A program made the position numbers and the translations under genes. A model generated the notes under the pieces. The model had not been told where the DNA came from. It made no database searches and saw only the letters and a program-made list of their open reading frames with translations. From Pseudomonas aeruginosa PAO1 (GTDB lineage Bacteria > Pseudomonadota > Gammaproteobacteria > Pseudomonadales > Pseudomonadaceae): a stretch of DNA of 64,000 nt. Of the stretch, positions 47,738 to 59,114 are shown piece by piece. The stretch lies in assembly GCF_000006765.1 (NCBI RefSeq), contig NC_002516.2; one strand, written 5' to 3'. Position 1 is the stretch's first letter. Each line of letters starts with the position of its first letter.

Positions 47738-49303
47738 ATGATGAAACCCGAAGATTTCCGTGCCTCTGCCACCCGTCCGTTCACCGGCGAGGAGTACCTC
47801 GCCAGCCTGCGCGACGACCGTGAGATCTACATCTACGGCGACCGCGTCAAGGACGTCACCAGCCACCCCGCCTTCCGCAACGCGGCCGCCTCCATGGCCC
47901 GGCTCTACGACGCCCTGCACGATCCGCAGAGCAAGGAAAAGCTCTGCTGGGAGACCGATACCGGCAACGGCGGCTATACCCACAAGTTCTTCCGCTACGC
48001 GCGCAGCGCCGACGAACTGCGCCAGCAGCGCGACGCCATCGCCGAGTGGTCGCGGCTGACCTACGGCTGGATGGGCCGCACCCCGGACTACAAGGCCGCC
48101 TTCGGCAGCGCCCTCGGCGCCAACCCGGGCTTCTACGGGCGTTTCGAGGACAACGCGAAAACCTGGTACAAGCGCATCCAGGAAGCCTGCCTGTACCTCA
48201 ACCATGCCATCGTCAACCCGCCGATCGACCGCGACAAGCCGGTGGACCAGGTCAAGGACGTGTTCATCTCGGTGGACGAGGAAGTCGACGGCGGCATCGT
48301 CGTCAGCGGCGCCAAGGTGGTCGCCACGAATTCCGCGCTGACCCACTACAACTTCGTCGGCCAGGGTTCGGCGCAACTGCTCGGCGACAACACCGACTTC
48401 GCCCTGATGTTCATCGCGCCGATGAACACCCCCGGCATGAAGCTGATCTGCCGCCCCTCCTACGAACTGGTGGCGGGTATCGCCGGATCGCCGTTCGACT
48501 ACCCGCTGTCCAGCCGTTTCGACGAGAACGACGCGATCCTGGTGATGGACAAGGTGTTCATCCCCTGGGAGAACGTACTGATCTACCGCGACTTCGAGCG
48601 CTGCAAGCAGTGGTTCCCCCAGGGTGGCTTCGGCCGGCTGTTCCCGATGCAGGGCTGCACCCGCCTGGCGGTCAAGCTCGACTTCATCACCGGCGCCCTC
48701 TACAAGGCCCTGCAATGCACCGGCTCCCTGGAGTTCCGCGGCGTGCAGGCGCAGGTCGGCGAAGTGGTGGCCTGGCGCAACCTGTTCTGGTCGCTGACCG
48801 ACGCCATGTACGGCAACGCCAGCGAATGGCACGGCGGCGCCTTCCTGCCCAGCGCCGAGGCCCTGCAGGCCTACCGCGTGCTGGCGCCGCAGGCCTACCC
48901 GGAGATCAAGAAGACCATCGAGCAGGTGGTCGCCAGCGGCCTGATCTACCTGCCCTCCGGCGTTCGCGACCTGCACAATCCGCAACTCGACAAGTATCTC
49001 TCCACCTATTGCCGCGGCTCCGGCGGCATGGGCCACCGGGAGCGGATCAAGATCCTCAAGCTGCTCTGGGACGCCATCGGCAGCGAGTTCGGCGGCCGCC
49101 ACGAGCTGTACGAGATCAACTACGCCGGCAGCCAGGACGAGATCCGCATGCAGGCCCTGCGCCAGGCGATCGGCAGCGGGGCGATGAAGGGCATGCTCGG
49201 CATGGTCGAGCAGTGCATGGGCGACTACGACGAGAACGGCTGGACCGTGCCGCACCTGCACAACCCGGACGACATCAACGTGCTCGATCGCATCCGCCAA
49301 TGA
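47738..49303 (+). CDS. hpaA: 4-hydroxyphenylacetate 3-monooxygenase oxygenase component (HpaB type; named hpaA in PAO1)
   Basis: EEYLASLRDDREIY, GWMGRTPDYK, SRFDENDA and FGGRHELYE motifs. Confidence 0.96.
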   Translation: MMKPEDFRASATRPFTGEEYLASLRDDREIYIYGDRVKDVTSHPAFRNAAASMARLYDALHDPQSKEKLCWETDTGNGGYTHKFFRYARSADELRQQRDAIAEWSRLTYGWMGRTPDYKAAFGSALGANPGFYGRFEDNAKTWYKRIQEACLYLNHAIVNPPIDRDKPVDQVKDVFISVDEEVDGGIVVSGAKVVATNSALTHYNFVGQGSAQLLGDNTDFALMFIAPMNTPGMKLICRPSYELVAGIAGSPFDYPLSSRFDENDAILVMDKVFIPWENVLIYRDFERCKQWFPQGGFGRLFPMQGCTRLAVKLDFITGALYKALQCTGSLEFRGVQAQVGEVVAWRNLFWSLTDAMYGNASEWHGGAFLPSAEALQAYRVLAPQAYPEIKKTIEQVVASGLIYLPSGVRDLHNPQLDKYLSTYCRGSGGMGHRERIKILKLLWDAIGSEFGGRHELYEINYAGSQDEIRMQALRQAIGSGAMKGMLGMVEQCMGDYDENGWTVPHLHNPDDINVLDRIRQ

Positions 49304-49331: not shown

Positions 49332-49844
49332 ATGTCCCAGCTCGAACCCAGGCAGCAAGCCTTCCGCAACGCCATGGCGCATCTTTCGGCGGCGGTCAAC
49401 GTGATCACCAGCAACGGCCCGGCCGGACGCTGCGGGATCACCGCCACCGCGGTCTGCTCGGTCACCGACAGCCCGCCGACGCTGATGCTCTGCATCAACC
49501 GCAACAGCGAGATGAACACGGTGTTCAAGGCCAACGGTCGACTCTGCGTGAACGTCCTCAGCGGCGAACATGAAGAGGTGGCCCGCCACTTCGCCGGCAT
49601 GACCGAGGTCCCGATGGAACGCCGCTTCGCCCTCCACGACTGGCGCGAGGGCCTCGCCGGGTTGCCGGTGCTGCACGGCGCCCTGGCCAACCTGCAGGGA
49701 CGCATCGCCGAGGTCCAGGAGATCGGCACCCACTCGGTGCTGTTGCTGGAACTGGAGGACATCCAGGTCCTCGAACAGGGCGACGGCCTGGTCTACTTCA
49801 GCCGCAGCTTCCATCGCCTGCAATGCCCCCGGCGGGCGGCCTGA
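49332..49844 (+). CDS. hpaC: 4-HPA 3-monooxygenase flavin reductase
   Basis: FRNAMAHL, GITATAVCSVTDSPPTL, GTHSV. Confidence 0.96.
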   Translation: MSQLEPRQQAFRNAMAHLSAAVNVITSNGPAGRCGITATAVCSVTDSPPTLMLCINRNSEMNTVFKANGRLCVNVLSGEHEEVARHFAGMTEVPMERRFALHDWREGLAGLPVLHGALANLQGRIAEVQEIGTHSVLLLELEDIQVLEQGDGLVYFSRSFHRLQCPRRAA

Positions 49845-49907: not shown

Positions 49908-50324
49908 TCAGCGGCGGTGCGCCGGCGGGATCGAGTAAGTGCCGACCACATGGGCGACCGGTTCCGCGTCGCCTTCGGAGAACAGCGAGACCTCGCCCAT
50001 CGCCAGGGTCTTGCCGACCTTCATCAGGCGGCACTCGGCGACCACCCGGCGGTCCGCCGCGGGACGCCGCAGGAAGTTGATGGTCAGGCTGGTGGTCACC
50101 GCCAGCGGGACGATGCCGATCTCGCCCAGTACCGCCACGTACAGCGCGACATCGGCGATGGCCATCAGGGTCGGCCCGGAGACCGTGCCGCCGGGGCGCA
50201 GGTCGCTGGCGTCGACCGCCTGCCAGACCGTGGCGCTACGCTCGCCGACGGCTTCGACCACGACCCGGGTCTGGGGAAATTCGCGCTGGATGAAACGGGC
50301 GATCTGCTCTTTCTTGTCGGTCAC
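49908..50324 (-). CDS. PaaI-type hotdog thioesterase (PA4093)
   Basis: LRPGGTVSGPTLMAIAD and AVTTSLTINFLR. Confidence 0.88.
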   Translation of the reverse strand: MTDKKEQIARFIQREFPQTRVVVEAVGERSATVWQAVDASDLRPGGTVSGPTLMAIADVALYVAVLGEIGIVPLAVTTSLTINFLRRPAADRRVVAECRLMKVGKTLAMGEVSLFSEGDAEPVAHVVGTYSIPPAHRR

Positions 50325-50371: not shown

Positions 50372-51331
50372 CTAGCGGCCACGCGCCTCGCTCGGCGTCA
50401 TCCCGTAGCGCGCCTTGAAGGCCCGGGCGAAATGCGCCTGGCTGGAGAAGCCGTGGCGATAGGCGACCTCGGCGACATCCAGGCGCCGGCCCTGGGGCGA
50501 AGCGAGCAACTGGCGGGCCCGCTCCAGGCGCCGCTCCTGCAGGTAGCGCCCGGGCGAGCTGCCTTCCTGGGCGAACAGCCGCGCCAGGTGCCGGCTGGAG
50601 ACGCCAGTGGCGGCGGCCACCCGCTCGCAGCTCAGGGCGGGTTCGTCGAGATGCTGCTGGATGTACTGCTTGGCCGCCAGCAGGTAGGACGCGCCCAGGG
50701 CGCTGGCACGGTGCTCGCCGGCATGGTCGCTGATGATGCTCGCCAGCAGGTCGTAGGCTTCCTCCTGGTAGCGCTCGGCATCCTCGCCATGGGGGCTGTC
50801 GAGGAAATCCCGGGTACGCTCGCCGAGGGTCCGCACCAGCAGGCGCTGCACCGGGCTTTCCGCGCCGATCTTCAGCGGTCCCTTGAAGTCGCGCAGGCAG
50901 CGCTCGGCGAAATCGTCCTGGGGAATGTCGAAGATGAACTGCCGCATCGGTCCGGAAAAACCGAACAGGTAGGGCTTGTCGGTCCGGTAGATAACCAGCT
51001 CGCCCGGTTGCAGGAGGTTGCAGCCGTTGTCCTGGTAGAAGAACGACTGGCTGCCCTGCACCAGGGAGACGAAGATCGACTCCTTGGGCACTGCGCGGAT
51101 CATCGAGCGGTCGCGCTCCACCACGTGCTCGTTGCCGCCGATGCGGGCCAGCCGCAGGCGTTCGAGGCAGAGGTTGTCCTGGGTCGCGGCGAAGCCGGCC
51201 TGGGAATACGACGAACATTTCAGGCCAACCAGGATGGAAGCGTTGTAGTCCTCCCAGAACGCCAGCCGCTGCTCCAGGGGAATGTCCTGGGTGCTGGCCC
51301 GCCGGGTTTCGAGCAAGGCATGTGCGGGCAT
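50372..51331 (-). CDS. AraC-family regulator with FeaR-like N-terminal domain (PA4094)
   Basis: PLEQRLAFWEDY, YLFGFSGPMRQFIF, VAEVAYRHGFSSQAHFARAFKARYG. Confidence 0.9.
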   Translation of the reverse strand: MPAHALLETRRASTQDIPLEQRLAFWEDYNASILVGLKCSSYSQAGFAATQDNLCLERLRLARIGGNEHVVERDRSMIRAVPKESIFVSLVQGSQSFFYQDNGCNLLQPGELVIYRTDKPYLFGFSGPMRQFIFDIPQDDFAERCLRDFKGPLKIGAESPVQRLLVRTLGERTRDFLDSPHGEDAERYQEEAYDLLASIISDHAGEHRASALGASYLLAAKQYIQQHLDEPALSCERVAAATGVSSRHLARLFAQEGSSPGRYLQERRLERARQLLASPQGRRLDVAEVAYRHGFSSQAHFARAFKARYGMTPSEARGR

Positions 51332-51551
51332 TTTTATTCTTCTCGTCGAACGCTGCGTGGACCTCCCGGACCTCAGGCAAGGCCTCCGGGGCCAGGCGCC
51401 GGGCCGCTCCGCCGACCTGTCGCGGTCGGTCGGCGAGGCGCCTGGCACCCCGTCATTAACATCTGAATCCTTTCCTCCGTCAATCGCCCTCCAGCCGGCT
51501 CCGACGCTGGGCAGGCCAGCTTGGCGGCGCGTCGCGGGTCGCGCCAGGCCA

Positions 51552-51616
51552 TGTCCGAAAAGCGCAAGTTTCCTGGCCGCCAGGGTCAAACCCGAAGGCC
51601 CGCCCATGGCTAGAGT
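51552..51616 (+). promoter_or_regulatory. Tandem AraC/FeaR-type boxes plus -10 for the cupin operon
   Basis: TGTCC-N8-CAAG (51552) and TGGCC-N8-CAAA (51574), 22 bp apart; TAGAGT at 51611. Confidence 0.62.
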
Positions 51617-51649
51617 CGGCCCGACGATAACAACGACAGAGGCCGCCCC

Positions 51650-52183
51650 ATGCCCGAACTCGCCACCCGTGAATTCTGGAAAGACCTGCAACCGATTCCC
51701 GACTGCTTCAAGCCGGACGCCAAGCCCGAGGTCTACCTGCGCAACGCGCCGACCGAGGACGAGCGCCTCTACGTGCCCTTCACCGAGACCGTGAAGTCGC
51801 GTCCGCTGTGGATCTCGCCAAGCGAAAACCGCTGGTGCGACATCCTGATGGCAACGAGCGCCGGCCTGGTCAACCGCCACTACCACCCGCACGAGGTGTT
51901 CGCCTACACCATCAGCGGCAAGTGGGGCTACCTGGAGCACGACTGGACCGCCACCGCCGGCGACTTCGTCTACGAGACGCCCGGCGAGGGCCACACCCTG
52001 GTGGCCTACGAGCACGAGCAGCCGATGCGTGCATTCTTCATCGTCAAGGGACCGCTGGTCTGGCTCGACGAGAAGGGCAACGCGGACGGCATCTTCGACG
52101 TCCACGACTACATCGCGATGTGCCGTGAGCACTACGACAAGATCGGCGTCGGCGCCGCCTACATCGACTCCCTGTTCCGCTGA
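51650..52183 (+). CDS. Cupin, 2,4'-dihydroxyacetophenone dioxygenase (DAD) family (PA4095)
   Basis: NRHYHPHEVFAYTISGKWGYLEHDW...FVYETPGEGHTL His triad pattern of DAD. Confidence 0.82.
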   Translation: MPELATREFWKDLQPIPDCFKPDAKPEVYLRNAPTEDERLYVPFTETVKSRPLWISPSENRWCDILMATSAGLVNRHYHPHEVFAYTISGKWGYLEHDWTATAGDFVYETPGEGHTLVAYEHEQPMRAFFIVKGPLVWLDEKGNADGIFDVHDYIAMCREHYDKIGVGAAYIDSLFR

Positions 52184-52253
52184 CCCCGGGCGCGCGCCGC
52201 CCTGGCGGACGCGCGCCTCCCCGCCGGCCGGCCCGCCCGGCCTGGAGACCGAC

Positions 52254-53509
52254 ATGGCGCATAACAACAATTCCGCCAGTTACGAAAACGTCCTGCTCTG
52301 CGTGCTGTTCCTGACCTTCGGCTTCGTCTTCTTCGACCGCCTGGCGCTGTCCTTCCTGTTTCCCTTCATGGAACAGGAGCTGCAACTGAGCAACAGCCAC
52401 CTGGGCATGCTCTCCTCGGTGCTGGCCCTGGCCTGGGCGGTATCCGGCGCGCTGGTCGGCGCCTGGTCCGACCGCCGCGGGCAGCGCAAGCCGCTGCTGA
52501 TCGTGGCGGTGATCCTGTTCTCGCTGTGCTCGGCGCTGTCCGGGCTGGTCGGCGGCTTCCTCAGCCTGCTGCTGTTCCGCGGCATCATGGGCCTGGCCGA
52601 GGGGCCGATCCTGCCGCTCTCGCAATCGCTGATGGTCGAGGCCTCCTCGCCACATCGCCGCGGCCTCAACATGGGTCTGCTACAGGGCTCGGCGGCCGGC
52701 CTGCTCGGCGCGGTGATCGGCCCGCCGCTGCTGGTGGCCCTGGCCGAAGCCCTCGGCTGGCGTCACGCCTTCATCGTCTCGTTGCTGCCGGGTCTGCTGA
52801 TCGCCTGGTTGATCTGGCGCCATGTGCGTCCCGACCCGCCCCGCGCGCAGCGCCCGGCGCCGCGCGCAGAAGAAGCGAAAGGCAAGCGCCTGGCACTGCT
52901 GAAGAGCCGCAACATCCTGCTCTGCACCCTGATCAGTTGCGTATTCGTCACCTGGTTCATCGTGCTGATTTCCTTTACCCCGACCTTCCTGGTCAACGCC
53001 CGCGGCTTCAGCCCGGCGACCATGGGCAGGCTGATGAGCTGCCTGGGCGTCGCCTGGGTGGTCTGGGGCTTCGCCGTACCGGCGATATCCGATCGCATCG
53101 GCCGTCGACCGACCCTGGTGGCGTTCTCCCTGCTCGCCGCGTGTTGCCCGCTGGCGCTGCTCTATGCGCCGAACGCGACCAGCCTCGGCCTGCTGTTGCT
53201 GCTGACCTACACCGGGCTCGGCTGCTTCACCCTGTTCATGGCGACCATCCCGGCGGAGACCGTCTCGCGCGGCGTCATCGCCACCGCCCTCGGCCTGATC
53301 ATGGGCCTCGGCGAACTGGTCGGCGGTTTCCTCGCGCCGACCGTGGCCGGCTTCGCCGCCGACCGCTTCGGCCTGTCCATCGTCATGTGGATGTCCTGCG
53401 GCGGCGCCCTGCTCGCCGCGTTCCTCTCGCTGTTCCTGCGCGAAACCGCGCCCGCCGTGCTGGCGCGCCAGCGCAGCGCGCCTACCTCCGTCCTGCAAGG
53501 AAACCAACC

Positions 53510-53513
<4 letters not shown>
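52254..53513 (+). CDS. MFS transporter (PA4096)
   Basis: FFDRLAL, GAWSDRRGQRK and SDRIGRR MFS motifs; about 12 TMs. Confidence 0.93.
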
Positions 53514-55308
<1,795 letters not shown>

Positions 55309-55392
55309 GCCGCCTTCGCTCCGGATGCACCTGTCCGCTTGGGGCGGACAGCGATTCGCACGACAGAACAACAACAAGACGAGTGCCTTGCC

Positions 55393-56697
55393 ATGAAAAC
55401 CCTCCGCACCTTGCCGGCGCTGCTCTGCGCCGGTTTCCTCGGTCTCTCCGCGCAGGCCGCCGAAGACAGCCGCAGCGGCCCGCTGGCCGGGTTCGGCGAA
55501 CGACTCCAGCGCCACGGCGTGAAGACCCACGCGCAGTTCTGGAGCCTGTCGCTGAAGAACCTCGACACCGGCCCGCGCCAGCACAGCTTCGGCAACAGCG
55601 GCGACCTGTTCCTCGGCGCCGACCTCGACCTCGCCACCCTCGCCGGCCTGGACGGCGCCTCGCTGCACATCGAGGAAACCCTGTTCATCCTCGACCGCGG
55701 CACCGGTCAGCCCACCGGGCCGAGCTGGCAGGGCGCGGTGGGCAGCTACTTCGGCGGCGCGCCGCTGCACAACGACATCGGCGCCAACCAGCTGAGCCTG
55801 CTCACCTGGCAGCAGCAGTGGCTGGGCGGACGCCTCGACAGCCATCTCGGACGGACCAATGCGCGGCGCTATTTCCTGATCTACAACTGCGAGACCGTGG
55901 TCACCTGCAACGACCCGATCATCGACGCCTCCACCGGCATCCTGCCGCCGCCCTACGGCGCCTGGGGCGGCTACCTGAAGTACCGGGCGACCCCGACCCT
56001 GTACCTGCACGCCGGGGCCTTCGAGTCCAACCCGGTGGATTACCTGAAGAAGCGCCATGGCCTCGATTTCGGCACCGACGACGCCAGCGGCACCAGCCTG
56101 CTGCTGGGGATCGGCGACAAGCGCGAGGAAAGCCTCGATCCCTACCGCTCGCACTATGAACTCAACGCCTACCTGAACACCGCCAACCAGGTCGACCCGC
56201 TCACCGGCGCCAGCGACCACGGCAGCGCCGGCGGCTTCTTCAAGTTCCAGCAGCTGTTCTGGCGCGCCGACGGCGGCCGCCTCGATTCGCCGAGGGCGCT
56301 GGGGCTGTTCGGCTCGCTGTCGGTATCGGCCGACGACAAGCAGCCGTTCCGTCATTTCGCCGAGCTGGGCCTGACCTACCATGCGCCCTTCGACCGCACG
56401 CGGGACAAGCTCAACCTCAAGGCCAGCTACCTGCGCCTGAACGATCACCAGCTGGAGTTCCAGCGCCAGGCGCGGATCGCCGCTGGCGGCGATGCGAAAC
56501 TCGGCCAGCGCGACGTGTACGCCCTGGAAACCAATGCGCACATCGCACTGACCCCGCACATCGCGCTGGAGCCGTCGGTGCAGTACATCTTCAACCCGGA
56601 CAACTACTACAACCCCGGCGCTCGCGAACTGAGCGGAGACGGTTTCGTCGTCGGCCTGCAACTGATGGTCGACATGGGCTCGCTGCTGGGGCTTTAG
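55393..56697 (+). CDS. OprB-family carbohydrate-selective porin (PA4099)
   Basis: Signal peptide; GADLDLATLAG; LETNAHIALTPHIALEPSVQYIFNP beta-strand pattern. Confidence 0.82.
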   Translation: MKTLRTLPALLCAGFLGLSAQAAEDSRSGPLAGFGERLQRHGVKTHAQFWSLSLKNLDTGPRQHSFGNSGDLFLGADLDLATLAGLDGASLHIEETLFILDRGTGQPTGPSWQGAVGSYFGGAPLHNDIGANQLSLLTWQQQWLGGRLDSHLGRTNARRYFLIYNCETVVTCNDPIIDASTGILPPPYGAWGGYLKYRATPTLYLHAGAFESNPVDYLKKRHGLDFGTDDASGTSLLLGIGDKREESLDPYRSHYELNAYLNTANQVDPLTGASDHGSAGGFFKFQQLFWRADGGRLDSPRALGLFGSLSVSADDKQPFRHFAELGLTYHAPFDRTRDKLNLKASYLRLNDHQLEFQRQARIAAGGDAKLGQRDVYALETNAHIALTPHIALEPSVQYIFNPDNYYNPGARELSGDGFVVGLQLMVDMGSLLGL

Positions 56698-56706
56698 CGC
56701 GCCGCC

Positions 56707-56745
56707 TGGCAGCCTCGGTCAACCCCGCCGGCAGGCTGGGACAAG
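56707..56745 (+). promoter_or_regulatory. Tandem AraC/FeaR-type boxes upstream of the GMC oxidoreductase
   Basis: TGGCA-N8-CAAC (56707) and CGGCA-GGCTGGGA-CAAG (56729), 22 bp apart. Confidence 0.62.
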
Positions 56746-56851
56746 CGGCCGGGCGCGCTTCCCCGTCCAATGGAGTAGCGTCGCGCCCATGGGCGCGGGG
56801 CGAAAAAGAACGCCGGGCGAGGCCCGGCAGCACACCCAGAAAGGTGCCGAC

Positions 56852-58531
56852 ATGACTTCCACTGCCCGCCGCTCGTTCGACTACATCGTGGTCGGCGCCG
56901 GCTCCGCCGGTTGCGTCCTGGCCAACCGTCTTTCCGCCGATCCCGCCGTCTCGGTCTGCCTGGTCGAGGCCGGCCCCAGCGACCGCACGCCGCTCCCCGC
57001 CGCCTACATCCGCACGCCGGCCGGGATCATCCGCCTGATCGCCAACCCGAAGTGGAACTGGATGCATCGCTTCGCCGCCCAGCCCGGCACCGCCAACCAG
57101 CCGATCGCCTGCCCGCGCGGCAAGGTCTGGGGCGGCTCCAGCGCGATCAACGGGATGATCTACATCCGCGGCGACCGCCACGACTACGACCGCTGGGCAT
57201 CCCTCGGCAACCGTGGCTGGAGCTACGACGAGCTGCTGCCGTACTTTCGCCGCTCGGAACATTTCGAGCCGGGCGAATCGCCCTGGCACGGGCGCGGCGG
57301 CGAATTGAACGTCGCCGCGCAGCGCAGCCCGGGCCCGATCAACCAGGTGTTCTTCCAGGCCGCCGAGGAAATGGGCTGGCCGTACAACGCCGACTTCAAC
57401 GGCGAGCGCCAGGAAGGCATCGGCCCGTTCCACGTCACCCAGGTCAACGGCGAACGCTGTAGCGCGGCGCGCGCCTTCCTGCACCCGGCCCTGGCGCGGC
57501 CCAACCTCACCGTGCTCAGCTCGGCGCTGACCCTGCGCGTGCTGCTGGAAGGTACCCGCGCCACCGGCGTGGAGATCAGCCAGGCTGGCGCGGTCGTGCA
57601 ATTGCAGGCACGCCGCGAAGTGATCCTCAGCGCCGGCTCGATCAACTCGCCGCAGCTCCTGTTGCTCTCCGGCATCGGCCCGGCGGCGGAACTGGCGCGC
57701 CACGGCATCGTCCAGCGCCATGAGTTGCCTGGGGTCGGCGAGAACCTGCAGGACCACCAGGACATCGTGCTGATGTACCGCACCGAGGCCAAGCTCGGCT
57801 ACGGCCTGGGCTTCTCGCCGAAGGGCTGGCTGCCGCTGCTGCGCTCGCCCTGGCAGTACCTGTTCGGCCGGCGCGGGGCGCTGACCTCGAACACCGTCGA
57901 GTCCGGTGGCTTCCTCCGCCTCGACCCGCAGGCAGAGACCCCGGAGCTGGGTCTGATCGTCGCCCCCGCGCTGAAGAACCAGCCGCAGCGCCTGGTCCCC
58001 TTCGGCCACGGGGTCAGCCTGCACGTCGCGGTGATGCACCCGCAGAGCCGCGGGCGGGTCCGCCTGAACTCGCCAGACCCGCACGACCGGCCGCTGATCG
58101 AAGCCAACTTCCTCAGCCACCCTGCCGACCTCGATACCCTGGTCCAGGGTTTCCAACTGGTCCGCAAACTGGCCGCCAGCCGCAGCTTCGCCCGTCACCT
58201 CAAGGGCGAGCTGGTACCGGGCCCGCAGGTTTCCAGCCGCGGCCAGATCGAGGCCTGGATCCGCGCCAACCTGGGCACCGTGTTCCATCCGGTGGGCACC
58301 TGCAAGATGGGCCACGACCAGCTCGCGGTGGTCGACGACCAGTTGCGCGTGCACGGCCTGCAAGGCCTGCGGGTGGCCGATGCGTCGATCATGCCGACGC
58401 TGATCACCGGCAATACCAACGCCCCGGCGATCATGATCGGCGAGAAGGCCGCCGACCTGATCCTCGGCAAGCCGGCGCCCCATGCACCGCCCGCGCGACA
58501 ACCGGCCGTGCAGGCTCTGGCCGGCGCCTGA
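56852..58531 (+). CDS. GMC-family FAD oxidoreductase (PA4100)
   Basis: DYIVVGAGSAGC, PRGKVWGGSSAINGMIYIRG, VFHPVGTCKMG, GNTNAPAIMIGEKAAD. Confidence 0.95.
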   Translation: MTSTARRSFDYIVVGAGSAGCVLANRLSADPAVSVCLVEAGPSDRTPLPAAYIRTPAGIIRLIANPKWNWMHRFAAQPGTANQPIACPRGKVWGGSSAINGMIYIRGDRHDYDRWASLGNRGWSYDELLPYFRRSEHFEPGESPWHGRGGELNVAAQRSPGPINQVFFQAAEEMGWPYNADFNGERQEGIGPFHVTQVNGERCSAARAFLHPALARPNLTVLSSALTLRVLLEGTRATGVEISQAGAVVQLQARREVILSAGSINSPQLLLLSGIGPAAELARHGIVQRHELPGVGENLQDHQDIVLMYRTEAKLGYGLGFSPKGWLPLLRSPWQYLFGRRGALTSNTVESGGFLRLDPQAETPELGLIVAPALKNQPQRLVPFGHGVSLHVAVMHPQSRGRVRLNSPDPHDRPLIEANFLSHPADLDTLVQGFQLVRKLAASRSFARHLKGELVPGPQVSSRGQIEAWIRANLGTVFHPVGTCKMGHDQLAVVDDQLRVHGLQGLRVADASIMPTLITGNTNAPAIMIGEKAADLILGKPAPHAPPARQPAVQALAGA

Positions 58532-58792
58532 CTAGCCGCCCTGGCTGCAGGCGCTGGCGTACTTGCGGTAGGCCAGCGAATGCAGCTTGCCGGCGGAGTC
58601 TAGGTAGTCCATCCGTGCATCGACGATCTCGCAGGTGGTCGACGCCTGTTCCTGGGTCGCCACCACCTTGTGCACATCCAGCGGCATGCCGTAGCGGTAG
58701 CTTTCGGTCGGTACCGGTGCGGCGGCCTGGGCGGCGAACGCGGGAAGCGCAAGCGCGGCGAGCAGGGTGGTGGCGAGCAGGGTGCGAGTCAT
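58532..58792 (-). CDS. DUF2790 small exported protein (86 aa)
   Basis: Signal peptide; YRYGMPLDVHKVV, CEIVDARMDYLDSAG and terminal Cys. Confidence 0.82.
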   Translation of the reverse strand: MTRTLLATTLLAALALPAFAAQAAAPVPTESYRYGMPLDVHKVVATQEQASTTCEIVDARMDYLDSAGKLHSLAYRKYASACSQGG

Positions 58793-58929
58793 GGGGGATC
58801 TCCTGGCGGCAGGACCGCGTCGGTGGAAGGCGACATGCCTTCGTCGAGGCCTATTCCAGGCCGCGGAGTTGTCCCGGATGTGTCGCTGGAATGCCCGATT
58901 CGTCAGCCGCTGTATCGCCGCTGCCGGCC

Positions 58930-59114
58930 GATACATGGCCGTACATTCGCCGCCCCGCTCCCGCCGGACGAATCGCGCCCGGCGCCATCCGTCGTCTCCC
59001 CCGTTCGCGACAGCGACAACCGGGCTTTTTTGCACGCCCCGGTATTCGCCCCGGCTCCGGATACAGTGCAATACAAACCCCGGCAGGCAAGCGCCGCGGG
59101 CGCGGATACACTGC
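58930..59114. promoter_or_regulatory. Probable BfmR boxes (GATACAnnGC, 10-bp direct repeats)
   Basis: GATACATGGC-CGTACA (58930), GATACAGTGC-AATACA (59060), GATACACTGC (59105). Confidence 0.7.

Follow-up and report, generated by a model that had tools for sequence, protein, structure and literature searches.

Organization of the locus

Positions 50,372–58,531 of the 64,000-nucleotide stretch of Pseudomonas aeruginosa PAO1 DNA analyzed here (NC_002516.2; the window) are filled exactly by seven genes, identified through open reading frame (ORF) calls and family scans, and the boundaries of this segment are the stop codons of an AraC-type regulator gene and a GMC flavoprotein gene. With a GC content of 66–73%, the window contains many spurious ORFs overlapping real genes, and the reading frames were fixed by GC3, translations, and family scans. 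The genes and two intergenic features are as follows.

50372–51331, minus strand: AraC regulator, 319 amino acids (Pfam and NCBIfam scans)
51454–51616, plus strand: conserved, putatively regulatory region in the AraC–cupin spacer (alignment of 21 Pseudomonas loci)
51650–52183, plus strand: cupin, 177 amino acids (PDB and Pfam matches)
52254–53513, plus strand: MFS transporter, 419 amino acids (MFS_1, E 2.4e-51)
53510–54568, plus strand: MDR dehydrogenase, 352 amino acids (ADH_N, ADH_zinc_N)
54583–55308, plus strand: SDR dehydrogenase, 241 amino acids (adh_short_C2, E 8.8e-57)
55393–56697, plus strand: OprB porin, 434 amino acids (OprB, E 1.7e-77)
56811–56829, unstranded: GC-rich hairpin in the porin–GMC spacer (terminator-like scan and sequence)
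56852–58531, plus strand: GMC flavoprotein, 559 amino acids (GMC_oxred_N, GMC_oxred_C)

The divergent AraC and cupin genes lie 318 bp apart, the MDR start codon overlaps the MFS stop codon by 4 nt (ATGA), and the remaining gaps are 70, 14, 84, and 154 bp. The overlapping or closely spaced genes and the conserved promoter/operator region support an operon structure. The original prediction of an AraC gene divergent from a cupin-MFS-MDR-SDR-OprB-GMC series was borne out, all seven genes being real and their coordinates exact. The T-run of the hairpin lies on the minus strand only, and the porin–GMC gap containing it, 154 bp here and 152 bp in P. paraeruginosa, is 19–36 bp in most other Pseudomonas.

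The cupin and its active site

The cupin aligns without gaps with PDB entries 4p9g (E 1.2e-98) and 5bpx (E 3.9e-89) and is matched by Cupin_7 and Cupin_2 in the Pfam scan. Both cupin motifs of 2,4′-dihydroxyacetophenone dioxygenase (DAD) are present, i.e., GLVNRHYHP at residues 72–80 [G(X)3RHXHP] and EGHTLV at 113–118. The list of active-site residues and their roles was taken from PMC4219425, the window protein having the published numbering plus one; it names 22 metal, catalytic, and pocket residues, every one of which the window protein shares with Alcaligenes DAD. The iron-site residues His76, His78, and His114, together with Tyr93 and Glu108, are also identical in 76 of 76 orthologs, and the 17 pocket residues, all shared with the Alcaligenes enzyme, include the phenol-binding Trp61/Asp63, the stacking Phe43/Phe129, the polar Val41/Ser49/Tyr153, and the hydrophobic lining; all but three of the 22 positions are invariant in the orthologs. 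The length of 177 amino acids, the cupin motifs, and the three-His iron site are likewise those of DAD from Alcaligenes sp. 4HAP and Burkholderia sp. AZ11. Judged by its active site, the protein, which had been proposed to be a DAD-family cupin, is a true ortholog of the characterized non-haem iron dioxygenase (EC 1.13.11.41) and would be expected to convert 2,4′-dihydroxyacetophenone and O2 to 4-hydroxybenzoate and formate.

The sole characterized physiological role of DAD is in the catabolism of 4-hydroxyacetophenone, an intermediate of 4-ethylphenol breakdown on which the Alcaligenes source of the purified enzyme was grown, and the DAD substrate is thought to arise there from hydroxylation and not from diol dehydrogenation (PMC4219425).

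Dehydrogenases, porin, and flavoprotein

The MDR protein matches (R,R)-butanediol dehydrogenase (PDB 6ie0; E 7.5e-89) across 346 residues and carries the motifs CGICGSD at 34–40 (Cys37), GHE at 69–71, a structural Cys4 at 100–114, GLGPIG at 179–184, and Asp203. It is predicted to be a zinc-dependent, NAD-dependent enzyme of the (R,R)-butanediol/sorbitol dehydrogenase type; the match and the zinc and NAD motifs uphold at type level its earlier description as butanediol dehydrogenase-like, although its structural-zinc Cys4 loop is absent from 6ie0. The SDR protein matches PDB 4avy/4b79, a "probable short-chain dehydrogenase," over residues 1–241 (E 6.8e-155) and, with TGGSSGIG at 16–23, NNAG at 83–86, Ser133, and YSASK at 146–150 (Tyr146/Lys150), is classified as a classical SDR of solved structure and unassigned function. 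In the NCBIfam scans, neither dehydrogenase received a subfamily-level assignment, every match being under cutoff: the best model for the MDR was IolM (209 bits; cutoff, 450), and the SDR scored well with meso-butanediol and glucose dehydrogenase models. Both enzymes could act on another alcohol.

The reversible conversion of 1-phenyl-1,2-ethanediol to 2-hydroxyacetophenone is catalyzed both by MDRs of the (2R,3R)-butanediol dehydrogenase type and by SDRs, the stereochemistry being opposite in the two families (PMC7046757, PMC4989518). The MDR–SDR pair resembles RCR (MDR) and SCR (SDR) of Candida parapsilosis, which show opposite stereospecificity on an aryl-1,2-diol (PMC4989518, PMC7046757), and the window MDR is of the same type as the bacterial (2R,3R)-butanediol dehydrogenases active on 1-phenyl-1,2-ethanediol; unlike the window enzymes, these are known from biocatalysis and not from a catabolic operon. 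By analogy, (R)- and (S)-diols may be divided between MDR and SDR, as had been suggested for the two enantiomers. In PAO1 with Candida albicans, the dehydrogenase genes PA4097 and PA4098 were upregulated only approximately 2-fold and 1.7-fold, respectively (PMC9993114).

The porin matches PF04966 over almost its full length (model positions 2–371 of 372), and a pattern search placed the end of its signal peptide at AQA, residue 22. The OprB family is classed as carbohydrate-selective. This classification, the closest solved relative of the MDR, and the SDR scores are what might be expected of a non-aromatic acyloin or diol pathway, in which the cupin would cleave an aliphatic α-hydroxyketone and the compound degraded would be 2,3-butanediol, acetoin, hydroxyacetone, or a sugar alcohol. 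Such a pathway is nevertheless highly improbable: the whole aromatic DAD pocket is unchanged, including Trp61/Asp63 and Phe43/Phe129, related clusters encode aromatic-aldehyde dehydrogenases and a 4-phenol oxidoreductase, and loss of the substrate 4-OH alone lowers the turnover of Burkholderia DAD to 5%, as cited in PMC4219425.

The GMC enzyme is matched by GMC_oxred_N (E 4.2e-56) and GMC_oxred_C (E 4e-41) and contains the FAD-binding GAGSAG (15–20) and HPVGTCKMG (479–487) with the C-terminal catalytic His. It scores 593.8 bits with the NCBIfam choline dehydrogenase subfamily (PRK02106), just under the cutoff of 605, and matches a chloramphenicol-inactivating oxidoreductase (PDB 8b7s) at E 1.6e-120; identification as the choline dehydrogenase BetA was rejected, TIGR01810 giving 516.9 bits against an equivalog cutoff of 732. 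By family membership, it is a choline dehydrogenase-like FAD oxidoreductase and an accessory member of the cluster, its gene being found in only part of the lineages; in the 19 loci where this gene follows the porin gene, the MDR gene is always present as well. The enzyme may act on a primary alcohol group, either of the operon substrate or of a relative of it. It lies outside the scheme proposed below and is counted against a glycol pathway.

Regulator and putative regulatory region

The regulator has a C-terminal double helix-turn-helix (HTH_18, E 1.4e-24; HTH_AraC) and an N-terminal AraC_binding_2 sensor domain (E 3.4e-8). Its best NCBIfam match is FeaR (E 1.5e-35), with an alignment spanning both domains (residues 47–317) and a score of 123 bits against a curated cutoff of 199, and it is accordingly classified as an AraC/XylS-family protein related to FeaR, not as a FeaR equivalog. 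As in the feaR-feaB-tynA system of Escherichia coli for aromatic amine/aldehyde catabolism, the regulator gene adjoins genes of 4-hydroxyphenyl-C2 metabolism; unlike that system, the P. aeruginosa operon has neither an amine oxidase nor a phenylacetaldehyde dehydrogenase. A divergent AraC ortholog with 61–94% identity is found in the Pseudomonas loci in which the upstream flank is retained.

Across 21 Pseudomonas loci, an alignment of the 260 nt preceding the start codon of DAD shows blocks at least 85% conserved in an otherwise diverging sequence: CATTAACATCTGAA (51454–51467), GTCAA (51479–51483), GTCCGA (51553–51558) with a second G[GT]CCG approximately 21 nt downstream, GGTCAAACC (51584–51592), and a −10-like TAGAGT (51611–51616). 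This conservation suggests a regulatory role, and the result of a strict sigma-70 scan, which detected no promoter in the spacer region, fits an activator-dependent promoter.

Conservation of the module and alternative routes

Relatives of DAD are encoded by 548 GTDB species representatives, of which the best 80 loci were analyzed. An MDR and/or SDR gene lies within 3.6 kb of DAD in 74 of the 80, and four of the other six are cut contigs (L012, L021, L032, and L057). Dehydrogenase density within 3.6 kb of DAD is 0.16/kb, compared with 0.023/kb farther out in the same loci (approximately 7-fold). This enrichment, and the recurrence of the same gene order in dozens of species, indicate that the arrangement is not due to chance. 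Comparative genomics thereby establishes a module of DAD, dehydrogenase, transporter, and regulator, widespread in soil, plant, and marine bacteria, in which MDR/SDR is a near-invariant partner of DAD across the alpha-, beta-, and gammaproteobacteria among these best 80 of 548 species.

The components vary between lineages. MDR only is present in 17 Pseudomonas loci and SDR only (47–49% identical) in 13, whereas the P. aeruginosa group, Marinobacterium, and one Paraburkholderia plasmid have both, and the SDRs of alphaproteobacterial loci are 29–38% identical to that of the window; this alternation represents non-orthologous swapping at the same step. Transporters and regulators are also swapped, with MFS and porin in some lineages and a LivKHMGF-type ABC transporter in others. 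The MFS gene immediately follows DAD in 42 of 42 gamma/beta-type loci among the best 80 of 548; the porin gene occurs in 32 of 34 Pseudomonas loci (L012 ends after the MFS gene), and a general porin takes its place in Paraburkholderia.

The MFS protein matches the D-galactonate and aromatic-acid/H+ symporter subfamilies of NCBIfam equally and weakly, both far below cutoff. Anion symporters are therefore as close to it as any other transporters, and a carboxylated or acidic substrate is possible. The dehydrogenases might act reductively or at another oxidation state, converting 4-hydroxyphenylglyoxal to the hydroxyketone, or oxidizing a 3-aryl-2,3-dihydroxypropanoate to a β-keto acid that would decarboxylate spontaneously to 2,4′-dihydroxyacetophenone. 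In Marinobacterium, an aromatic aldehyde dehydrogenase (ALDH) gene directly follows the GMC gene beside the module, and in P. danubii an ALDH gene follows the GMC gene at a distance of a few genes, suggesting aldehyde and acid intermediates in a wider pathway. We consider this explanation improbable: it comes purely from chemical reasoning, its transporter matches are all far below cutoff, neither a glyoxalase, a decarboxylase, nor any other gene that would support it is present, and we know of no precedent for such dehydrogenases.

The known 4-ethylphenol/4-hydroxyacetophenone route is a somewhat better, although still unlikely, candidate. In this route, 4-hydroxyacetophenone would be formed from 1-(4-hydroxyphenyl)ethanol by MDR and SDR and converted to 2,4′-dihydroxyacetophenone by a monooxygenase whose gene is unlinked, and DAD would cleave the product. 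Besides the growth substrate of the Alcaligenes source, an AraC-DAD-MFS-MDR module in Kerstersia, of the same family as Alcaligenes, favors this route, as does the Novosphingobium humi locus, which combines two DAD-like cupins, cytochrome c, two SDRs, and an MDR with a VAO/PCMH 4-phenol oxidoreductase (E 1e-238 with nsVAO), a flavocytochrome of the PCMH/eugenol-hydroxylase type, a kind that hydroxylates 4-alkylphenols at C-alpha. However, no oxygenase occurs in the operon or in any conserved module among the best 80 of 548 loci, and no monooxygenase was found near DAD in Kerstersia or Comamonas, so the cluster would encode the first and third steps and never the second. HpaB/HpaC is encoded 2 kb upstream, but this family hydroxylates the ring and not the methyl group. 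A dedicated polyol-type porin and transporter are also less expected for a hydrophobic ketone. In the Alcaligenes-type pathway the DAD substrate is made by hydroxylating 4-hydroxyacetophenone; here DAD is instead linked to an alcohol dehydrogenase of the NAD type, and this linkage in 74 of 80 loci, with no linked oxygenase, indicates that the DAD substrate is probably supplied by a different step and, in consequence, that the growth substrate probably differs as well.

Proposed pathway

The simplest reading of modules lacking an oxygenase is that the dehydrogenase makes the compound that DAD cleaves, a diol being converted to an α-hydroxyketone. We therefore favor, with a probability of roughly 0.55, the reading that the AraC protein activates an operon for the catabolism of a polar 4-hydroxyphenyl compound whose side chain is a two-carbon glycol, most simply 1-(4-hydroxyphenyl)ethane-1,2-diol; the direction and substrate of the dehydrogenases, the importer roles, and the inducer are those that we infer. 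The substrate would cross the outer membrane by way of the OprB-type porin and would then be carried across the inner membrane by the MFS protein, likely the importer; these putative importers are encoded together in the operon. The NAD-dependent MDR and/or SDR would oxidize the benzylic secondary alcohol to 2,4′-dihydroxyacetophenone, and the Fe(II) cupin would insert O2 and split the side chain to yield 4-hydroxybenzoate and formate. The 4-hydroxybenzoate would enter the protocatechuate/β-ketoadipate route, encoded elsewhere.

Related clusters bear on the origin of the substrate. The ALDH of alphaproteobacterial loci matches salicylaldehyde dehydrogenase (E 1e-212) and vanillin dehydrogenase (E 1e-203), and, together with the 4-phenol oxidoreductase, points to plant- or lignin-derived 4-hydroxyphenyl compounds. 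Sphingomonad LigD/L/N/O C-alpha dehydrogenases are similarly SDRs that oxidize benzylic alcohols of lignin-derived aromatics. An SDR gene lies directly downstream of two DAD genes in strain SG61-1L (PMC4651090), and in Novosphingobium sp. MBES04 a DAD-like gene showed the strongest induction of any gene by a lignin model compound (44.6-fold with GGGE; PMC10866074). The N. humi cluster is of the same kind, although DAD has diverged further in the sphingomonads (63% identity in N. humi) and their clusters also encode a TonB-dependent receptor, a second cupin, and a flavocytochrome, none of which is present in the P. aeruginosa window.

The proposal of an uptake-plus-catabolism unit, with aryl glycols as candidate substrates, is thus partly supported by the DAD ortholog, the linked dehydrogenases, and the co-encoded importers; its extension to lignin-derived diols agrees with the related loci as far as plant or lignin phenolics in general, and the link to glycols of octopamine and noradrenaline received no specific support from the operon. 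The description of the pathway as undescribed holds within the literature searched, in which no account of the operon or of an aryl-glycol route was found. A variant of the known DAD pathway, made from ordinary enzyme families, is plausible, and the same DAD–dehydrogenase pairing in dozens of species suggests a route from aromatic glycols to 4-hydroxybenzoate and formate.

Gene Content of the Operon

The region has a GC content of 66–73% and is crowded with overlapping spurious open reading frames (ORFs); a strict GC3 filter overlooked most genes, and the seven genes were set by translations and family scans. They agree with the gene content of the original prediction, whose boundaries, 50372–58531, run exactly from the stop codon of the AraC gene to that of the GMC gene.

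Genes of the operon and its divergent regulator
50372–51331, minus strand, AraC-family regulator, 319 aa
51650–52183, plus strand, cupin (PA4095), 2,4'-dihydroxyacetophenone dioxygenase (DAD), 177 aa
52254–53513, plus strand, MFS transporter, 419 aa
53510–54568, plus strand, Zn-dependent medium-chain dehydrogenase (MDR, PA4097), 352 aa
54583–55308, plus strand, short-chain dehydrogenase (SDR, PA4098), 241 aa
55393–56697, plus strand, OprB-family porin, 434 aa
56852–58531, plus strand, GMC flavoprotein (PA4100), 559 aa

The MFS stop and MDR start overlap (ATGA), and the remaining gaps in the operon are 70, 14, 84, and 154 bp. The MFS subfamily was sought as a clue to substrate charge, and all matches were tied, far below the cutoff. 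The GC content of the cluster matches that of its surroundings, and its recent arrival in the PAO1 genome from a foreign source was rejected on this ground. Just upstream of the regulator lie genes for HpaB, the 4-hydroxyphenylacetate 3-hydroxylase oxygenase (47738–49303, plus strand), and HpaC, a flavin reductase (49332–49844, plus strand), and a 4HBT-type thioesterase gene (49908–50324, minus strand) immediately follows the AraC gene in the same orientation. Together with the operon, these genes may form a loose grouping for 4-hydroxyphenyl-C2 compounds. In P. chlororaphis-type loci, ORFs of HpaB/HpaC size, recognized by size and ORF cluster only, occur about 8 kb or less from DAD; they share ORF clusters with the HpaB/HpaC-sized ORFs of P. 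paraeruginosa, whose locus is near-identical.

The Cupin Is a DAD Ortholog

The cupin aligns without gaps, over residues 5–177, with the solved DAD of Alcaligenes sp. 4HAP (E = 1.2e-98). Among the key residues of DAD, His76, His78, and His114 bind the iron, Tyr93 and Glu108 are invariant, Trp61 and Asp63 bind the phenol, and Phe43 and Phe129 provide stacking; Val41, Ser49, and Tyr153 make up the polar pocket, and a further ten residues form the hydrophobic lining (PMC4219425). All 22 are identical in the cupin, at a numbering offset of +1, and 19 of these positions are invariant across 76 DAD orthologs, the other three varying slightly. Both cupin motifs were also found. The proposed DAD-family membership was thus borne out, and the protein is a true ortholog rather than a mere family member. 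Because the alignment, key residues, and motifs all match DAD, the cupin is predicted with high confidence to convert 2,4'-dihydroxyacetophenone and O2 to 4-hydroxybenzoate and formate. A pathway for non-aromatic acyloins is very improbable, given that the aromatic pocket is unchanged. The DAD identity itself is not new, since homologs are already publicly annotated as "2,4'-dihydroxyacetophenone dioxygenase family protein"; the sole described biological role of DAD is 4-hydroxyacetophenone degradation, which rests on two strains.

Dehydrogenases and the Proposed Feeding Step

The products of DAD need no dehydrogenase, and a dehydrogenase therefore most likely supplies its substrate. The one-step secondary-alcohol precursor of 2,4'-dihydroxyacetophenone is 1-(4-hydroxyphenyl)ethane-1,2-diol, from which we infer the feeding step: the MDR or SDR would oxidize the aryl-1,2-diol to 2,4'-dihydroxyacetophenone, and DAD would then cleave the latter to 4-hydroxybenzoate and formate. 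We put the probability of this mechanism overall, a diol fed to DAD by a linked dehydrogenase, at roughly 55%; a precursor in a different oxidation state, or an acidic one, is considered quite unlikely.

The best solved relative of the MDR is the (R,R)-butanediol dehydrogenase 6ie0 (E = 7.5e-89), although the structural-zinc Cys4 loop kept in the MDR is missing from 6ie0. The SDR matches, over its full length, the "probable short-chain dehydrogenase" of PDB entries 4avy/4b79 (E = 6.8e-155), which we take to be P. aeruginosa PA4098, consistent with the locus tags used in the original prediction. MDRs of the (2R,3R)-butanediol dehydrogenase type convert 2-hydroxyacetophenone to (R)-1-phenyl-1,2-ethanediol (PMC7046757), and in Candida parapsilosis an MDR oxidizes the (R)-diol, and from that hydroxyketone an SDR produces the (S)-diol (PMC4989518). 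By analogy with these published activities, the MDR and SDR may divide the two diol enantiomers between them, which would fit their co-occurrence in three distant lineages.

Conservation of the Module in Other Species

A census of one genome per species found a DAD relative in 548 species. The best 80 of the 548 loci (DAD identity 79–99%) were fetched with 10-kb flanks, the seven proteins were mapped onto them, and all ORFs were also clustered de novo.

Gene arrangements around DAD among the best 80 of 548 loci
P. aeruginosa group, 3 loci: AraC / DAD-MFS-MDR-SDR-porin(-GMC)
Conjugative Paraburkholderia graminis plasmid: AraC / DAD-MFS-MDR-SDR-porin(-GMC), a general porin replacing OprB
17 Pseudomonas species: AraC / DAD-MFS-MDR-porin-GMC
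13 species of P. fluorescens / P. syringae type: AraC / DAD-MFS-porin-SDR (SDR 47–49% identical)
Marinobacterium, Kerstersia, Comamonas: DAD-MFS-MDR(-SDR), without porin
38 mostly alphaproteobacterial loci: a different AraC, a LivKHMGF-type ABC importer, aldehyde dehydrogenase (ALDH), and SDR

In 74 of these 80 loci, DAD has an MDR or SDR gene no more than 3.6 kb away, and four of the other six are cut contigs (L012, L021, L032, and L057). Across the same loci, the density of MDR/SDR genes close to DAD is seven times that at greater distance. The SDR of the 38 mostly alphaproteobacterial loci is 29–38% identical and directly upstream or downstream of DAD. The type of regulator, the type of importer, and even the dehydrogenase fold are replaced, while the combination of DAD, one NAD-type alcohol dehydrogenase, and an importer persists. 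That this set outlasts the swapping of its components is the main evidence for consecutive dehydrogenase and DAD steps. The solute-binding protein of the alphaproteobacterial importer, compared with solved structures for a ligand-bound relative, gave only distant Leu/Ile/Val-type matches.

No oxygenase was found in the conserved modules of the best 80 of 548 loci, and a 4-hydroxyacetophenone hydroxylase adjoining DAD was sought in Kerstersia and Comamonas and not found. These results bear on the main rival, in which DAD serves the known 4-ethylphenol/4-hydroxyacetophenone route with an unlinked hydroxylase. Such a route agrees with the history of DAD and with the flavocytochrome of Novosphingobium, but it needs a middle step that is never encoded with the other two, and we regard it as rather unlikely.

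Origin of the Substrate

The DAD cluster on a Novosphingobium humi plasmid (locus L082, 3049–14229) contains a DAD with 63% identity, a second DAD-like cupin, an AraC regulator, an MFS transporter, a TonB-dependent receptor, two SDRs, and an MDR. It also encodes a cytochrome c with a signal peptide and a CxxCH motif, whose gene overlaps the start of that for a 4-phenol oxidoreductase of the VAO/PCMH family, closely related to nsVAO (9ffk; E = 1e-238). By chemical reasoning, C-alpha hydroxylation of a tyrosol-type 4-(2-hydroxyethyl)phenol would yield exactly the proposed glycol. VAO/PCMH-type enzymes hydroxylate the C-alpha of para-substituted phenols, and the paper on nsVAO left its physiological substrate and electron acceptor open (PMC7617285). 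The overlap of the two genes inside a DAD cluster suggests that the adjoining cytochrome c is the physiological acceptor of nsVAO and that the real substrate of nsVAO feeds DAD.

The module is common among soil, plant-associated, and marine bacteria. The ALDH of the alphaproteobacterial loci matches salicylaldehyde and vanillin dehydrogenases (E = 1e-212 and 1e-203, respectively). In Marinobacterium (locus L004, 15370–18565), the next gene after GMC encodes an aromatic-type ALDH that falls into one ORF cluster with the vanillin-dehydrogenase-like ALDH of the alphaproteobacterial loci, and in P. danubii (locus L009, 14244–20024) the same type lies a few genes downstream of GMC. Furthermore, ten alphaproteobacterial-type loci carry a ThDP enzyme directly upstream of DAD (L043, L048, L054, L058, L061, L063, L066, and L079, among others); that of locus L062 (8182–9981; 599 aa) matches NCBIfam PRK08327 with 658 bits. 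It is no more than a distant relative of benzoylformate decarboxylase and benzaldehyde lyase, and it may provide another means of cleaving aryl alpha-hydroxyketones or 2-oxo acids.

The gene content of the related loci suggests phenolics from plants or lignin. Hints in the literature agree with this direction: of the genes of Novosphingobium sp. MBES04, a DAD-like gene responded most strongly to a lignin model compound (44.6-fold induction with GGGE; PMC10866074), and in strain SG61-1L an SDR gene closely follows two DAD genes (PMC4651090). According to one lignin study, there is no known bacterial pathway for 3,4-dihydroxyphenylglycol (PMC6307125). Nothing was found that ties the operon to the glycol metabolites of octopamine or of noradrenaline and other catecholamines.

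Regulation and Expression

The 318-bp AraC–DAD spacer holds conserved blocks in 21 Pseudomonas loci, namely CATTAACATCTGAA, GTCAA, GTCCGA paired with G[GT]CCG at a distance of about 21 nt, and GGTCAAACC, and diverges elsewhere. A further conserved block, a -10-like TAGAGT, stands about 35 nt before the DAD start codon, and no strict sigma-70 promoter was found in the spacer, which looks like a putative activator-dependent promoter with AraC-type sites. Promoter and terminator scans of the plus strand gave nothing usable. Both domains of the regulator align with FeaR, at a score below the equivalog cutoff. PA4097 and PA4098 were among the 20 most raised P. aeruginosa genes by RNA-seq in biofilms shared with Candida albicans, though by only about 2-fold (log2 1.0) and 1.7-fold (log2 0.79), respectively (PMC9993114). 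The descriptions of PA4097 and PA5384 seem to have been interchanged in the text of the paper.

The GMC Gene and the bfm Neighborhood

The GMC gene occurs only in clusters with MDR among the best 80 of 548 loci. The porin–GMC gap is 19–36 bp in most GMC-bearing Pseudomonas and 152–154 bp in P. aeruginosa and P. paraeruginosa; in the window it holds a GC-rich hairpin (56811–56829) with a T-run on the minus strand only. The closest solved relatives of the GMC protein are a chloramphenicol-oxidizing enzyme and choline dehydrogenase, with similar scores, and the protein fails the cutoff of the BetA model. In most species it is probably an accessory part of the pathway.

In a bfmS mutant, PA4100 was reported to be raised more than 10-fold, with verification PCR on random-primed cDNA (PMC4148453). 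No BfmR box was found upstream of the GMC gene; exact boxes (GATACAnnGC) occur only in the bfmR promoter (58930–59114), at 58930, 59060, and 59105, with one near match, the motifs spanning 58907–59114. A gene for a secreted 86-aa DUF2790 protein (58532–58792, minus strand; Pfam E = 6.2e-21) diverges from bfmR across the spacer that holds these boxes, and its stop abuts the GMC stop. Since this gene starts at the BfmR-box region and ends at the GMC stop, and since the cDNA was random-primed and the GMC gene has no upstream box, antisense read-through from the DUF2790 gene could explain the reported induction.

Novelty and Perspective

Literature searches by locus tags, DAD, phenylglycols, and gene clusters turned up neither an account of the operon nor one of a route from a diol to DAD. 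The enzymes come from ordinary families, and DAD function is already known; within the literature searched, the conserved DAD–dehydrogenase–importer module and the aryl-glycol feeding step it implies appear to be undescribed. More tentatively, the operon could represent a widespread module for growth on aryl-1,2-glycols, with DAD relatives in at least 548 species, in which enantio-complementary MDR and SDR would feed both enantiomers to DAD. Candidate substrates would be 4-hydroxyphenylglycol, derived from tyrosol, octopamine, or beta-1 units of lignin, and perhaps the catecholamine metabolites MHPG and DHPG, and P. aeruginosa would use host- or fungus-derived phenylglycols.

As the enzyme families are all ordinary, such a module would extend aromatic catabolism and overturn nothing. 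Should aryl glycols indeed be turned into the DAD substrate by the linked dehydrogenases, this would fill a gap in the breakdown of phenylglycols from lignin, tyrosol, and olives and supply a ready enzyme set for biocatalysis, combining stereo-complementary dehydrogenases with a C–C cleaving dioxygenase. It would also offer a general explanation of the strong conservation of DAD (75–99% identity) across three proteobacterial classes, and an orphan operon of a model pathogen, including the crystallized 4avy/4b79 protein of unassigned role, would gain a function.
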